A stretch of DNA of 33,000 bases, taken from contig CM119379.1 of assembly GCA_051294905.1 (NCBI GenBank), positions 20,150,001-20,183,000 of the forward strand, in the 5' to 3' direction. Made by a program: the position numbers and the translations under genes. Positions 1-8,400 of this stretch are shown here, piece after piece. The notes beneath the pieces were generated by a model. The model was not told the DNA's origin and searched no databases. It was given only the letters and a program-made list of their open reading frames with translations. The stretch comes from Botryllus schlosseri. Taxonomy: Eukaryota. How positions within the stretch are numbered: position 1 is the stretch's first letter; each line of letters begins with the position of its first letter.

Positions 1-2476
1 ATGGCGATGGTGTCGTTGTAGTAAAACGTAGAATTAATCGACCTGCTGAATCTTGCGTTTTCCAAATAATTGGACGGGAAGACGCATTGCATTGCTGGGA
101 AAGACCGTGGGTGACGAGCACACCATGTAAAATAATTCGGGATTCATACACTTACTTTCACATTGAAAGCCGTCTATATCGGCAGACCACGTCCCGTCCG
201 ATTGGCAGGTGATGGAAAACACAGTGTCCGCGTTTTCACTGTTTTTCCGAGCACGGCCTTTATCGCATTCAAACACGAGCAATTCGTTAAAGGTTAACGA
301 AGCAGGCTCATGCAAAAGATGAGATCCGACTGGTGTGGAAATGTCCGGACATCTAGTGACTGCAAACAATTTTATACATCATCGGGCGTGAAGTTGCTAT
401 CGAAATTTCAATAAATTGCAGCTCCATTACGGTGGCGTTCTGAAGAAAACGGCTGATGCCAAAATTTTTACTTCGTTTTGCCCTTCAATTTGAGACCACA
501 TCGTATTTAGAGTGCAGTGCCCCTTTAATCTGACCACTGCTGCTATCCCGGTAAGACATCGTACTCTATCAATACCTTTACATTTGACATCTTCAGGACT
601 CCACCTCGCATTATCCGCACTGCATGTGATCGAAGTCTGTGCGATTCCGTTTTCCTGGTCGATCCAAAATCCTTTATCGCACACAATATCTCGTACATTG
701 CCGACGTAACTCCCACCAGATCTGATTACAGCGTTCTGAACGTACTCTGGTTGACCGCACATCACCTCTGTCGATTTTCAGTAATTTCAGTCTCGGTCAA
801 TAACAATCCACACACTTATCATACGTGTACACGTGACAGTATCCGGCGACGGAGACCATTCGCCGTCATTTTGACAATACAAGGTAGATGATAGCTTTCC
901 AGGAGTAATCCAATGCCCGCCATAGCATTTGTAGGTGATTCCATCTCCTATATTTGACATTGGCTTAGTATACCTTTCATGCTACCATACCTTATATCAC
1001 ATACTCACCAACTTTGTATTGGTAGTCCCACACTTTAGGTTCAGTCTGATAAGAAGATGGGACGTAACTAGGCGCGAGGCATGTCACCGCTATGAAATAA
1101 AATTGTAATCATTGAATAGTATATTCAATTGTATATTGAAGTTCTGTACCTCCAGGAAGCTTTTCAAAATTGTAATACTATATCAGAATTAGACGTGGTA
1201 CAATATTATGCATCAATTTTAAATCTTTGTAAATCTTGGCCCTCATTTACTGTGATAGCCACCACGTGATCGTTTTGAAATCAAAATAGTCAACAAACCA
1301 TTGGTTACAGCACATCTTGCATGGCTACCTAGGTCTAGAAACATTTTGTTCAATAGAAAGCCCGACCTTGACATGAGACACTTGCAACATTGGGTTTGAA
1401 CGAGCCATCGTTTTGACAGACTACAGTTGCTACAAATACACCAGGACTTATCCAATATCCTTCATCACATGTATACCTGTAAAAAGGGTACAGAAATATC
1501 CCAATAAAACAATTTGTGGTCATGATAGAACATTCATCACACTATCCATACCCGATAACATCATCGTATCCAATGACCGAGTCTATTTGATATGTTGCGT
1601 GTTCAACATCACCAGGATCTTGGCATTCGACAGCTGAAATGTAAAAGTTCATGACATTTGTCAAATCGGCTGTCTGAATGAGCGGATGTGACCAATTCAT
1701 TGAGTATTATATGTTTTACCACTAGTTTTAAGAGGGGTACGTTGATGTTGTTTTGCCTACTTACGTTTGCATTCAAATATAGAAGGATCCGGGTCCCAAA
1801 CACCATCTGCAGTACACTTAGTCATCCTGGAATATACAGCGATGTCCATCCAATACCCGATCGCGCAAGTGTATGTCACGGTCTTATCGTACGAAAAATC
1901 AGTGCCGACGATGTTAGCGTACAGAACAGTAGCGGGAGGGCGACACATCACAGCTGCAAATAATAAACATAGGGCTGTAATAATTGACGGAAAATGAAAA
2001 GACAATGTTCGATTCTTTGGAAATGGCAGAGTGTCTAGCAAAATGGCACGCCTCTGGATAACATTCATCATATAAATCCGAACACACTGAAATGGATATT
2101 AACTCCATTGGTGCGGTATTTGGGTGAGTAAAACTTGCGTTGTTTACCTATACATTCCACAGTGTCAAAAGAAGGATACCAATTCCCGGTGGCATCACAA
2201 ACAAACTTTTGTTTATCGGAAGTCTGTGAAATCCTCTTTCCCACTCCGCATTCGTAAATGACTTCAGCTCCGTACACAGTGCTTGGTGTCACTATTCAAC
2301 ATTCACATTTTAAGAAGCAAGCTTACAAAATACAAACGCTAGCTTACATAATTTGTGTGTTGTTCCTTCCAAGTCTGGTGGTTCTGAGCACCTTTGAAGG
2401 AAGCATTGGATGTCGCCAGCTGTTGGAGTCCAATATCCAAATCTCGTGCATGATATTGTCTCGGTAGGGGCCCCAT
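1..2476 (-). CDS. Sushi 5 C-half plus sushi 6-11 and the start of sushi 12
   Basis: Exons 2348-2476, 2148-2291, 1765-1953, 1367-1633 (split), 1009-1089 + 825-947, 576-767, 156-359, 1-94, all with CCP Cys/Trp spacing. Confidence 0.88.
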
Positions 2477-5400
2477 CTAAAAAATTAAGTGCAGGATTAT
2501 GTATTATAGGCTCCAACTTGCCTTGAGAAAACATTATGGCATATCTTGAATTTTTCAGTTTCATGTTGCAAGTCATTATATCTTACCAAGATAGGAGCAA
2601 ATATTATCAGTGGCGTCTTCTCCGCGGACATACCAGCTACTTGATGCGTCAGCGTATTGGTGCCCGGCTATTGCAATTAGATTGTCACTGTCGTTTACAG
2701 TTCTGTGATAAGTTAAATCAGTGACTGCATTCAATTAAAACTTCTTATTACATTTTATTGTTAAGAAAGAAAGATGTCAGACGTATACAATTCATGGCAC
2801 GATACGCTACCTTACTAGAACAGGTGGGTCCGAGTCTTTTATACTGAGCAAAACTTTGTTGCCACTGATAATAGGACAAGACCATTTCTGTCTAAAAAGA
2901 ACAGGGATATTCTACACACAGTTTCATTGGATACAGTATTCGTGGAAGCAGTTAAACTAGTTAAATTAGATGGATTTTACGTTTCGTCATTTATTCAGCA
3001 AGCTCATGGATTAAAAGATGCATAAGCAGTAAGTAAAACAGTAGATTAGATTAGGTTGGATTACATGAAGTCAAAATGCATTACAAACCTTGTCATCATA
3101 ATAGCCTTTTGACAGTTTGCAAACTATCATAATACTGCCAATAAAGGTCAAATAAAATGCAGAAAGACTAGGTACACAATCATCATCATCATTTATTACA
3201 ATTTTCATCAGTTGAAAAGAAGTGTGGAGTTAAAACAACTTGGAATTGCTTCATAGGCCAAAGGAGTTGCAATCACAAAACGTAGCATATAATATCCAAA
3301 CGAATTGATAAGAAACAAGAGAGATTATATTTTTCGAATCATTGATCTTGGTTGATACATTTTCAATGGTTTGTTTAAAATAATTACATACTTCGGCTCG
3401 GCGTGGTCACATCGACGGATGACAATATCGGCTGATTCATTTTCTGCTAGAGTAACAGATGCTCCGTCCTCCAATGACAAACACATCTAGCAGTACACTG
3501 GATTTAGTGCACGCAACACCACAATTCATGCTGCATAACAATCGCACCTTGGTTCCAACCATTCGAATTTGATCATCCCTTTCCCATATCCACGTGTACA
3601 AGTGATCCTTCCAATCACATTCACTGAACAAAGCTGCTTTGCTTCTGCTATCTATTCGCAGGCATTGTCCTCGATGTGCACTCATAATAACAAAACTACG
3701 TCGAAGTTCATGACCTTTAAGGAAAAGATTTCAAATCTTGTTGGCCCCCTGGCAGTTCACTCCCTTTGTTCTTACCTTCTTTATCGCAAGTATACTGAAG
3801 TGTGTCGGAAAACAAATATTGAGATACATTTCCTAACACAGCAGAGGTGTCTGGTTCGCTCTTTCCAGGCAATGGGCAAGTCACATCTGCCACAAAAATT
3901 TGGTTTAACATGGTGAAATACAATATGAAGTGACTGACACGTTGATAAAGAAGTATGACGTCGAATCACCTAAGTATGGAACAGTATGGAATCAAATGTA
4001 AAATTGCTCCAATAGAGTTTATATCCGTATGAACATAATGGCATCCGTCGTTTCGTTGAATTGAATAGTTAACTCAAAAACTAAAATTGGTGGTGTCTAT
4101 GAGCCAAAATTATGTCAATACTACCATCATGTTGTTGCTACCCATTACAAACTCAACCACTTTACACCAACGGCACAACCTATATAATAAACGCATACAG
4201 CATGAATAAAACTTACTTTCGCACCACGGCTCTGAAGGGTCCGGGTCCCATTTACCATATTTATCGCAAATAACGACTTTGTCGCGATCAATGTAGGCAT
4301 ATCCCAAGTCACAAATCACTATCAGCTTTGCATCATACCTAGTTACCAGATGGTTAAAATAAAGGAATATCCGAAGAAAATTCGTAACGGGAGCATACCT
4401 GTAGCTTGTAACAATCATATGTCCATGCGGAGGTTCAGAAGGTAGAGGACAGATAAGATCTTAATCGAACACAAAGAGATCACATTTCAACGTCAGCATT
4501 TTTACTGATTTACCATTTTACAACATTATCCGAGACCTTGAAACCAAAACAAGTCAAATTCAAGGAAATAAGTTAGATGCTACATACCGACGCAATCAAC
4601 GGTTTCCAACGGATTGGGTTCCCATGTTCCTTCGCCGGTGCATTCAAAACCGGTCACATTATGTAAGCCTTTTTCGATCCAATATCCGTCCAAGCACTCG
4701 TAAATGATTTGTGAGCCATAAGTGAATTCATTGCCAATGTACTTTGCATTTGGCGCACGAGGTGGGTAACCGCACGAGACGGCTAAAATATCATAGTCTA
4801 TTTTATAACTGGTGGTGGCGCATGAGAAGCAGTACTAACTCAAACATTGGAATGATTCCAGAGGTGGTTCCCATTTTTCTGTGGCTTGGCATTTACTAGA
4901 GAAATTTCTATGCTTTGCTGATGCGCCAATGCCGGTTCCGTAAACGCATTCGTAATAGACCGTGTCTTGATAACGGAACGTCGCAGGAGGCCTTGGTGTT
5001 AGCAGTGCCGCATTGGCAATAGTAATTGGATCAGGGCATATGAATCCTGAAAATGGGTCATAATATCCATTGAAGTATGATTAAAACCACGGTACATACG
5101 TACGTACATACATACGTACATATTGGGTGGATTATTTTAATGTCCATGTGAGGTTGTTAAAGGATATCATTATGTGATATAATAGTACAGATTTAAAAGA
5201 TCAATGCAATGTTACAATCTCAAGAAAAACTAGTAACTGCAACTGCGGTGGCATTTAACCACAGGTAAAATATGTAGTCTGCAAGTAATAACTAATATCA
5301 ATCCTTGATTACTTTCGCATGTCATAGTTGATGAATCAGGATTCCAAGTGGGTCCGAGAATAGGATCGCTCACACAAGCCAATTCAACTTCTGTGGCATT

Positions 5401-8400
5401 GGGATCCGCGCCAAATCCGAAACCGTGATAGCAACGAATAAGAACTCCGCGTCCGCCGATACGCCAATCTTCGAAAATCGTACGAGAATTCGGTGGTAGC
5501 GTAGGCTCGCGGCAAGTGTCAAGGATCTCTGTTGAAATTAAAAAGCTCAAATTTGTTAATGGATCATCGTGAAAAATGTCTTCATTCAATCATGTATGGC
5601 ACATCATATACACAAGCTGAATATGAAATCATCGCATCAGTACTACTGTAATTCCACATGAGGGGGTCGAAGTAAATGTTCCTGGGACTAAATTGGAAGT
5701 AAAAGTAACATCACAAATTTTTCTCTTTAAAAAGTAAAAGTAGCAATTTCCAGGAAAGTAAAACAGTGAATATCAGGGTTGTAATGACTCGAGACGTGCT
5801 TTTTTGGTGACTCGACTGGAATCGAGTCCTTTTTTGAAATGCGTAAAATGACTCGACTCGAGTCAATCTTAGTGGTGACTGGACTTGCACTCAAGTCATT
5901 ATGTATGACTCGAACTAAGTCATATTACTCGAGACTAAGGTGGCCAAGACGGACATTTCATTGTAACTTCGAAGAATAGTAAAGTTACCACATTATTGGT
6001 AATTCATCTATCAATTCTGATACTTGAAAAATAAGGCCAGAAACTGTTAAAATTGAGTAAAATTACTATATTATGAATACTATCCATTCTATATCATTCG
6101 AGCAGAGTTGAAAATAAGTGGGTCGAACTTGAAACTGAACATAATGACTTGGACTCGGACTCGAGTCAGAACACCACGACTCGGACTCGACCCTCTACTA
6201 GCTGACTTGGACTCTGACTTCGCTCGGTGGCGACTTGAAAATGACTCGAGTCAAAACTATAAAAGTGAGATTGACTTGTGACTCGGAACCTTGCGACTTG
6301 GTTACAACCCTAGTGAGTAATAGTGCAAGTAACGTAAAATCATCACCAATCGAGTGGTGCCGGTATGCAAAAGTACTTCGAAAAGTACTCCCACAAAGTC
6401 CGAATTTCGCTTACTCTTTTTGCACGCAAAGTAATGCGGATGGTGACAATTTCTTTCCTCGAATCCTACTTTGGCTTCGGACAGCAACGAAAATGTGACA
6501 CACCACCGAGTAAACTGCAAATCGCCCATCTTATTCTCACCATGCCGCCCCCTACCCATACAAAAATCACGATAACTTGAAGTCTCACCTAGATGAGTTA
6601 CTAATTACCTGTAGCACCAGGCAAACTTTGTGGGCTGGCCCCCACTGTCGCATACTGCTTCTCCGTTACCGAGATGAGTTATATCACATCCGTCATCTTT
6701 TACAGACATCACTGTGTAGTTGATGTGGTCGCTCCCTACCGCACATCTGCATCCATCGACAAATCCATCCTTGGTACCATCCGTCAAGTCCTTCTTATCA
6801 GCCCAAATACCGCCTATTCAAAATATGGGATGATCATAAGGTTCTTAATTCTATTATCATTACAAAGGATGCATATCGCTTTTCCGATAGTTGCATAATG
6901 CGCATTCAAAACAAATGGTACAAGCTATACATGCACAACTAAAGATTTTACCGAGCAATATGTGTGAGATCTTTCACGAATCAAACGTATTGTTTCAAAA
7001 ATTTTTCCAACCAAGTCACGAGTCACACAGTCAATCTTAAATGTGTAGGTATAGAGAGGATATAATGTTTGAGCTTTAAGGATGTTGGGGAATTTTCGCT
7101 GAAATGACCTCAGAATGACAAAGCTTTGTTGTTTGTGAAACATAACTTTTTTTCACCATTTATTGGGGCCCATGAATTCTATTTGCAGAGTCACATATCG
7201 CTGAAGATTAATTCAGACTTTTACAAAGCCTGAGCTAGTTTTCCTTAAACGATACGTTCATAATATATTTATGTATGGTTATAGTGATATTATATTGCCA
7301 ATGTTATTATGATGGCAGTTACAGACATGTTATAGCTGTTTTGTCGGCGACATATCATTGCTGAAGGAATTAACCACTTCGAAAACGTAAATAGAATGAA
7401 TCCAGGAAAAAGAGGATTAATATTGAAGATACGGCCTCTTATCAGTGTGTCTCCGAAGTTTCTAATGCTTCAACAAGTAGAATATTCGATGGCTTGAAAA
7501 TTTGTTTCTAAGTCATATCTATGTAACCACTTCCCAAATAATTGATTTCAAAATTGTACTATGGAACTAAGCGTTCCATTGCACCAGTTGCATCGAACAT
7601 CATGAAACAAGATCGATTCAAGGGCTGTAGATGATTTTTAAAGGCACAAATTTAGATGAGCACTTTGGTGTTGATCGCAGTGGAATAAGCATAACTTGAT
7701 ATCCAGATCAGAGCAACGATTAATGTAGATATATAACATTCAGTTATGAAGGTCACCTTTCAGAAAGCAGGATGCAGCAATATCGTTATCGTTAACAAAA
7801 GATCCCCGGTCGGTATCGGCATTACCACAAGAAGCATTTACGTTAGCGAGCTGACCACCCTTCTGAACCAGGAACAAATTTTCTGAACGTACAAACCTCA
7901 GTTGTGTTGGAATACTTGATAACAGCATTGTAAACCAACCTCCAGGCCTGTAACGATCGTCGCATACATAACGCAGCGAGTTTGCCGTTCTCCATTTCAT
8001 TTCACATGAATCTTCAAAATGTATCCCGGCAAGATGTAATCTGTCCCACGGTTCAACCTACTTAACACAAGTTGAGGACACATGAATCAAGGGTAATTGT
8101 AACGTAAGTCAACCCCATTAGCTAATTTGTAGCAGACTCAAGGCGCACATATAAATTTGTGAATGCAGTAAATTAACATCAATAGGATTTGTCACTCAAA
8201 TATGTAGTCTCGCGGTAGATCAACTGCTGACACAATGAACATCTTGCCTTGTCGTAGAGAAAATTATAACTGACACTCCTGAGTTTGATGTGGTATGGGT
8301 CCTTGGACCTGCAAATCCAGTGCTGCAACGGGTCGGTCAAATTGCAGGGGGTAACACGAATGCCTGGACCGACACCTAAACAACAAATCAAATTTACCTT

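Follow-up and report, generated by a model that had tools for sequence, protein, structure and literature searches.

The stretch of DNA analyzed here, referred to as the window, comprises 33,000 nucleotides (nt) of the Botryllus schlosseri genome (C9:20150001-20183000; 39% G+C, no N). Its minus strand carries a long multi-exon gene in which a complement control protein (CCP, or sushi) domain is interrupted midway by a ricin-type beta-trefoil. The nested arrangement is real; it has survived a gene duplication and recurs in another species, Styela clava. The encoded protein has an N-terminal array of Cys repeats and contains, in addition to trefoils, domains of the C-type lectin and Link-like types and an extended series of CCPs. 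We favor, with a probability of roughly 0.78, the reading that this is a constitutive nested lectin-domain architecture in a giant extracellular-type ascidian mosaic protein.

Architecture of the Interrupted CCP

The split CCP, its insert, and the CCP that follows are encoded by seven exons, denoted A to G.

Exon A, 3886-3776, minus strand: 111 nt, phase 1 in and 1 out; N-terminal half of the split CCP
Exon B, 3714-3548, minus strand: 167 nt, phase 1 to 0; opens with G-H-E-L, followed by a two-residue linker and trefoil subdomain alpha
Exon C, 3486-3392, minus strand: 95 nt, phase 0 to 2; start of trefoil subdomain beta (M-C-L...R-R-C)
Exon D, 2891-2811, minus strand: 81 nt, phase 2 to 2; Q-K-W-S-C-P motif and start of subdomain gamma
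Exon E, 2702-2587, minus strand: 116 nt, phase 2 to 1; subdomain gamma (S-S-W), then a linker of 11-13 residues
Exon F, 2476-2348, minus strand: 129 nt, phase 1 to 1; C-terminal half of the split CCP
Exon G, 2291-2148, minus strand: 144 nt; remainder of the next, ordinary CCP, used as a positive control

The introns between these exons are all of the GT..AG type, and the exon phases run 1|1, 1|0, 0|2, 2|2, 2|1, and 1|1. When the splice sites were located on the minus strand, the exon coordinates and phases given in a preliminary description of this DNA proved exact, including the assignment of phase 1 to the donors and acceptors at 3776, 2587, and 2476. Exons B to E (3714-2587) add up to 459 nt, or 153 codons, and encode ~150 residues. 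They form a cassette that is phase 1-1 symmetric, both here and in the paralogue described below, a symmetry that is characteristic of exon-shuffled modules.

Exon A contains Cys1, a Pro, a hypervariable loop, and the sequence Y-T-Cys2-D-K-E. Exon F opens with D-G-A-P-T-E-T-I-S-C and continues to D-I-Q-C; it contains, in order, Cys3, G-Y-W-T-P, and Cys4, followed by 14 residues of the next CCP. Between them, subdomain alpha in exon B has the motif C-L...C...Y-T-W-I-W...I-R, and the linker in exon E carries the sixth conserved Cys of the insert. The trefoil enters the CCP at the turn that connects the strand after Cys2 (G-[YH]-E-[LIV]) with the strand leading toward Cys3 (D-G-x6-C). The connection on the N-terminal side is limited to two residues, and on the C-terminal side it consists of the 11-13 residues with the conserved Cys.

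A CCP (PF00084) has ~60 residues with four cysteines in a consensus order, a Pro after Cys1, the pattern Y-x-C-x-x-G-[YF]-x-L around Cys2, and an invariant Trp between Cys3 and Cys4. The flanks were compared with a home-made CCP profile, derived from 18 canonical CCPs of the Styela protein rather than taken from Pfam. In the intact window protein, the N-terminal piece covers profile positions 1-38 and the C-terminal piece positions 40-59; by exon, the matches are 1-29/38 for exon A and 39/40-59 for exon F. The flanks are thus complementary halves of a single CCP, and the trefoil is nested in its middle, as the preliminary description had proposed. When the insert was excised and the G-H-E-L strand kept, the profile was matched from end to end (positions 1-59), with 29.4 bits for the window, 40.2 bits for the paralogue, and 34.9 bits for Styela. 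As a control, the neighboring ordinary CCP of exon G scored 39.6 bits against the same profile.

A plain exon skip that joins exon A to exon F gave 24.5, 32.5, and 28.6 bits for the window, the paralogue, and Styela, respectively. It had been suggested that skipping restores a contiguous CCP. The reading frame is indeed kept and the product still scores as a CCP, but the skipped part includes a strand of the CCP itself, G-[YH]-E-[LIV], which is encoded at the start of exon B, and the score falls 4-7 bits below that of clean excision in all three homologues. An acceptor at 2521, put forward as an alternative to 2476, was rejected, as it yields a poorer CCP (21.5 bits) and has no counterpart in the paralogue, where the intron is just 55 nt long.

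A six-frame scan of 2300-3950 showed that only the frames of exons A and F match the CCP profile; other open segments score below 5 bits. Additional exons that supply a separate half for either flank, which would have spoken against a single split domain, are therefore absent from this region on both strands.

Fold of the Insert

A trefoil profile was built independently from eight Pfam-identified trefoils of the same genome, of which five come from a 3085-residue open reading frame on C15, one from C13, and two from GalNAc-transferase genes. The spliced window insert scores 46.6 bits against this profile over positions 10-134 of 144. None of 1000 shuffled sequences reached this value, and the best of them scored 9.9 bits. 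The insert contains three Trp motifs (Y-T-W, Q-K-W, and S-S-W), and its three sub-repeats stack upon one another in a MAFFT alignment. The earlier designation of a three-repeat ricin-like domain is right. In six-frame genome scans with PF00652 and PF24562, the window exons were not matched; exon B' of the paralogue by itself scored 22.7 bits with PF24562.

The corresponding unit of Styela (residues 2255-2472) matches the Pfam family CysR_MRC2_N (PF24562) with 30.2 bits (cut-off 27, E 4e-7). A sequence search of the Protein Data Bank (PDB) gave weak but consistent matches to MRC2, to the cysteine-rich (CysR) domain of the mannose receptor, and to the lectin domain of GalNAc-T2. The ESM-Atlas neighbors nearly all belong to beta-trefoil families, and the 10 best family-bearing matches all share a family or clan with the top one.

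The fold of the insert was modeled on the 45%-identical Styela homologue, using an alignment to which the genome trefoils and the exon pieces of the window and the paralogue had been added. The AlphaFold model has ~12 strands, with a predicted local distance difference test (pLDDT) score of 77.9 and a predicted template modeling score (pTM) of 0.77. A Foldseek comparison of this model with the PDB placed the mannose-receptor CysR domain first (5xts and 1dqg), with E 3e-7 to 1e-6 and template modeling (TM) scores of 0.67/0.77, followed by actinohivin, the mistletoe and ricin-like B chains, and other R-type lectins. On the basis of the Pfam match, the independent profile, the Atlas neighbors, and the Foldseek ranking of the model, the insert is a ricin-type beta-trefoil of the CysR (mannose-receptor) flavor.

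Conservation in a Paralogue and in Styela

An HMMER scan of exon B against 1.84 billion representative proteins yielded three relevant matches, namely one Styela clava protein and two short fragments. The fragments are open reading frame calls that run from exon B-like sequence into an intron, and both come from one public sample. When homologues were sought by profile and within three length classes, the Styela protein and these two fragments were all that was recovered.

The Styela protein, XP_039270628.1, is annotated as "uncharacterized protein LOC120345301" and has 4991 amino acids. The spliced A-G protein is collinear with its residues 2258-2535 (45% identity over 280 amino acids, two gaps, E 9e-89), and therefore every predicted junction is mirrored in an independent gene model. 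The collinearity extends over the whole window gene, which corresponds to Styela residues 22-2892. Exon B is 48% identical to Styela residues 2295-2348, and exon D aligns with Styela without gaps. A newer Styela isoform, X2, of 7864 amino acids, contains the nested unit as well, so both retrieved isoforms, out of an unknown total, have the insert.

Elsewhere in the Botryllus genome, exon B matches a single locus, which is situated 130 kb away on the same strand.

Paralogous nested unit, C9:20021056-20023336, same strand as the window gene: seven exons with GT..AG introns and the phases found in the window

The exon lengths of the paralogue are 111/164/92/81/116/129/144, compared with 111/167/95/81/116/129/144 in the window. 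Its exon B' is 45% identical to exon B, and its exon D' is 57% identical to exon D. Because the same seven-exon unit occurs in both copies, the nested layout predates the duplication. Over the whole nested unit, the paralogue protein is 41% identical to that of the window and 52% identical to that of Styela, and this closer similarity to Styela suggests that the duplication may be older than the split from the lineage of Styela.

All 14 cysteines are conserved in the window, the paralogue, and Styela (four in the split CCP, six in the insert, and four in the next CCP). The identity of the trefoil between homologues is 37-46%, which is below that of the CCP halves. Judged by the Styela collinearity, by a paralogue with the same seven exons, and by the conserved cysteines, the predicted exon arrangement is far beyond chance.

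Transcript Data

Four sequencing runs were aligned on positions 1-6000 of the window. One of them, X1, consists of Logan contigs, among which the listed minus-strand GT..AG joints are 5312|5045, 4840|4782, 4217|3886, 3548|3486, 2348|2291, and 2148|1953. The B-C joint within the insert (3548|3486) is thus directly seen, as are the flanking joints from the upstream exon to exon A (4217|3886) and from exon F to exon G (2348|2291). A skip joint from 3776 to 2476 or from 3776 to 2521 does not occur among the joints listed, and the gene is uncovered in the three raw-read RNA runs.

The X1 depth is 5.3 for exon A, 5.9 for exons B-C, ~4.5 for exon E (from bin 2601-2800), and 6.2 for exons F-G. Coverage of exons alone accounts exactly for the bin depths: 139 exonic bases at a depth of 5.92 reproduce the reported mean of 4.11 for bin 3401-3600, and 144 exonic bases at 6.16 reproduce the reported 4.43 for bin 2201-2400. 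The insert exons are therefore as abundant as the CCP exons, which argues against predominant skipping in the X1 sample. In addition, the contig of exon A runs to 3774, two bases beyond the donor, before ending in five unaligned letters. The two bases fit exon B ("GT") and neither exon F ("AT") nor the 2521 extension ("GC"), although this is suggestive only.

The exon C contig differs from the reference at three positions, all of them synonymous. In exon A, at 3836-3856, an X1 contig gives an E-to-G and an L-to-V change in the variable loop of the CCP. The X1 depth of 6.4 in bin 2401-2600 exceeds what exons E and F provide; a contig probably covers the E-F intron, and the excess may come from genomic DNA, from RNA that has not been spliced, or from an unrelated match.

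Proposed Arrangement and Alternative Readings

In the arrangement that we propose, the R-type beta-trefoil of ~150 residues sits in the hairpin turn between two strands of the CCP. The N and C termini of a beta-trefoil adjoin each other. Because these ends lie side by side, the insert could leave and re-enter the CCP at one turn, and the CCP would close around it with its usual Cys1-Cys3 and Cys2-Cys4 bonds. The trefoil would then be held rigidly beside the CCP rod, most likely as a glycan-binding head. That both halves of the CCP and the guest belong to one polypeptide is suggested by the Styela gene models, by the continuity of frame and phase, and by the B-C, upstream-A, and F-G joints with their equal contig depth, and inclusion of the cassette is probably constitutive.

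Several observations weigh against this reading. X1 is only guessed to be RNA, and it contains an intronic contig at a depth of 2, which shows that genomic DNA or unspliced RNA is present to some extent. Exon D is not covered by any X1 contig, and none of the joints listed spans A-B, C-D, D-E, or E-F. The reads sampled from the three bulk RNA runs (X9, X12, and X13) show no expression of the gene. With regard to the fold, the Styela unit scores 27.1 bits with Ricin_B_lectin (PF00652), below the cut-off of 29, and a Pfam scan of the six single window exons gave no match. Moreover, when AlphaFold was given the complete nested unit and a shallow alignment, the pLDDT was only 31, and for this reason closure of the CCP around the insert is something that we infer.

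The same transcript data bear on the alternative that exons B to E are an optional cassette, with transcripts that include or omit it and a CCP that exists in both a plain and a lectin-bearing form. A cassette of 459 nt with phases 1-1 can be skipped without loss of the frame, the skipped product is still CCP-like at the scores given above, and the lack of a skip joint holds only among the joints listed. We nevertheless regard this as distinctly unlikely, given that skipping costs the conserved strand and 4 to 7 bits in every homologue, that the insert exons are covered to the same depth as the flanking CCP exons, that the two extra bases of the exon A contig fit exon B and not exon F, and that both retrieved Styela isoforms retain the insert. 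A bolder form, in which the cassette is a regulated switch between a plain and a lectin-headed CCP and the gene family has repeatedly gained trefoils inside other domains, is highly doubtful; if true, it would make mid-module insertion a recurrent route to new recognition receptors in tunicates. Exons B to E might instead be a separate gene within an intron, or dead pseudo-exons, with the CCP halves joined directly in the mRNA. No listed contig directly spans A-B or E-F, and single exons lack a Pfam match, as this alternative would have it. It is close to refuted, however, by the common strand, the matching phases, and the open frames in four of four exons, all kept in the paralogue and in Styela, as well as by conservation of all six insert cysteines, by the splicing of B to C in RNA-like contigs whose polymorphisms there are synonymous, and by the fact that exon B encodes the CCP's own G-H-E-L strand.

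A different question is what the trefoil does. It could have lost the ability to bind sugars and act instead as a structural spacer or as a module that binds proteins, in which case the nesting serves geometry. The low identity of the trefoil between homologues relative to the CCP halves would fit such a role, as would the first and third "QxW" motifs, which read Y-T-W and S-S-W. The nested L4 and LF domains of laminin, which have a carbohydrate-binding module (CBM) fold, likewise have no known sugar binding (PMC5338690). On the other hand, the structures most similar to the insert belong to genuine lectins (the mannose-receptor CysR domain and R-type lectins), and the gene is rich in further lectin-type domains. 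A spacer is thus possible but rather unlikely, and we consider sugar binding by the trefoil the more probable function.

Origin of the Insert and a Second Trefoil

The edge of the cassette does not coincide with the edge of the domain, as the first 4-6 residues of exon B belong to the CCP. The mere dropping of a trefoil into an existing intron at either boundary does not yield the observed structure. According to the splice joints listed, the gene's remaining CCPs are each encoded by a single exon, apart from one that is split near the N terminus.

A further trefoil-like region is present in the same gene.

Second trefoil-like region, ~8953-7755, minus strand: motifs L-E-W-V-W, L-Q-H-W-I-C, and E-M-K-W; weak Pfam match of ~19 bits

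It corresponds to Styela residues 1659-1877, a stretch bordered by a Link-domain match and by an incomplete match to Lectin_C (profile positions 6-64). Intron positions shared by this region and the trefoil nested in the CCP were sought, and none were found. The preliminary description had spoken of a second nested insertion in this gene and had taken it to suggest a recurring mode of exon shuffling into intra-domain introns. The analysis did not show nesting of the second trefoil, whose intron positions differ, and since exon B also carries a CCP strand, recurrent shuffling is unproven. One donor in the second region looks like GC rather than GT. The paralogous gene or segment (C9:20021056-20033999, 130 kb downstream) has its own second trefoil, ~4.4 kb upstream of the nested unit.

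Comparison with Known Systems

The CysR domain of the mannose-receptor family (MRC1 and MRC2/Endo180; PF24562; 1dqg, 5xts, and 5ao5) is the best match to the insert, both in structure and in Pfam. Like the insert, it has six cysteines and occurs within a protein that also bears C-type lectin domains. It is a free N-terminal domain, however, whereas the insert is buried in another domain, and the identity is ~20%.

The closest analogue in kind to the CCP nesting is found in laminin, whose L4 domain, globular and rich in beta structure, has a CBM fold and is set between two cysteines of a small disulfide-held module, the laminin-type EGF-like (LE) module. In laminin the host is LE and the guest a CBM35-like sandwich; here the host is a CCP and the guest a trefoil. 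Laminin is universal in animals, whereas the nesting of a trefoil in a CCP was found only in ascidian sequences.

Some CCPs of CR1 and C4BP alpha are also divided, near the Gly after Cys2 and close to the position of the A-B intron here. In these proteins nothing lies between the half-exons, in contrast to the 459 nt coding for another domain in the present gene. The vertebrate CCPs that an intron within the domain divides between two exons are the second short consensus repeat (SCR) of each CR1 repeat and SCR2 of C4BP alpha (PMC2189269, PMC2118859).

Trefoils and CCPs are also combined in another gene of the same genome.

Tandem CCP-trefoil mosaic protease, C15:7389391 onward: uninterrupted frame of 3085 amino acids, apparently without introns

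Its translation looks like a mosaic of numerous CCPs and five ricin-type trefoils, together with a CUB-like stretch and, at the C terminus, a trypsin-like protease. The five trefoils share the pattern C-L...C...W-x-W...R-x-V-x-T-x-C-L...C...Q-x-W-x-C with the nested trefoil. Each of them comes after an intact CCP, in a beads-on-a-string order, and is not nested.

A search of open-access text with exact phrases found no description of a split or interrupted sushi or CCP domain. The nesting appears to be undescribed, even though the Styela sequence is public as an "uncharacterized" protein with precomputed Pfam domains.

CCPs are usually treated as indivisible. Here, a CCP of 60 residues with two disulfides hosts a lectin domain of 150 residues in one hairpin turn, and the nesting has been maintained through a gene duplication and, apparently, through the split from the lineage of Styela. 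Exon insertion into ancestral introns accounts for less than 10% of high-confidence domain gains in animals (PMC2926785). Domains gained in the middle of a protein form a small class, to which the present gene adds a clean case with several exons and symmetric phases; its cassette boundary is at odds with simple insertion into an intron. Protein engineers may find here a CCP loop in which large insertions are tolerated, and tunicate biologists an uncharacterized family of giant lectin-rich proteins that are candidates for glycan recognition.

Other Features of the Window

In every RNA run, short intronic stretches (3182-3213, 1122-1168, 401-528, and 5793-5999) reach a very high read depth, and the matches there have loose ends to the left and to the right; in X9, for example, ~1600 reads match 3182-3213 alone. 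They are short matches to abundant transcripts or repeats elsewhere and do not reflect expression of this gene.

The N-terminal Cys-repeat array is encoded at 32330-21488 on the minus strand by ~20 tandem exons of a ~60-residue repeat (Y-P-x-x-C-x-x-Y-Y-G-P-H-P-x-x-C-L-E-x-M-W-N-x-S-x-C-L-P-Q-G). The array, whose Styela equivalent matches no Pfam family, is expanded relative to Styela residues 22-390.

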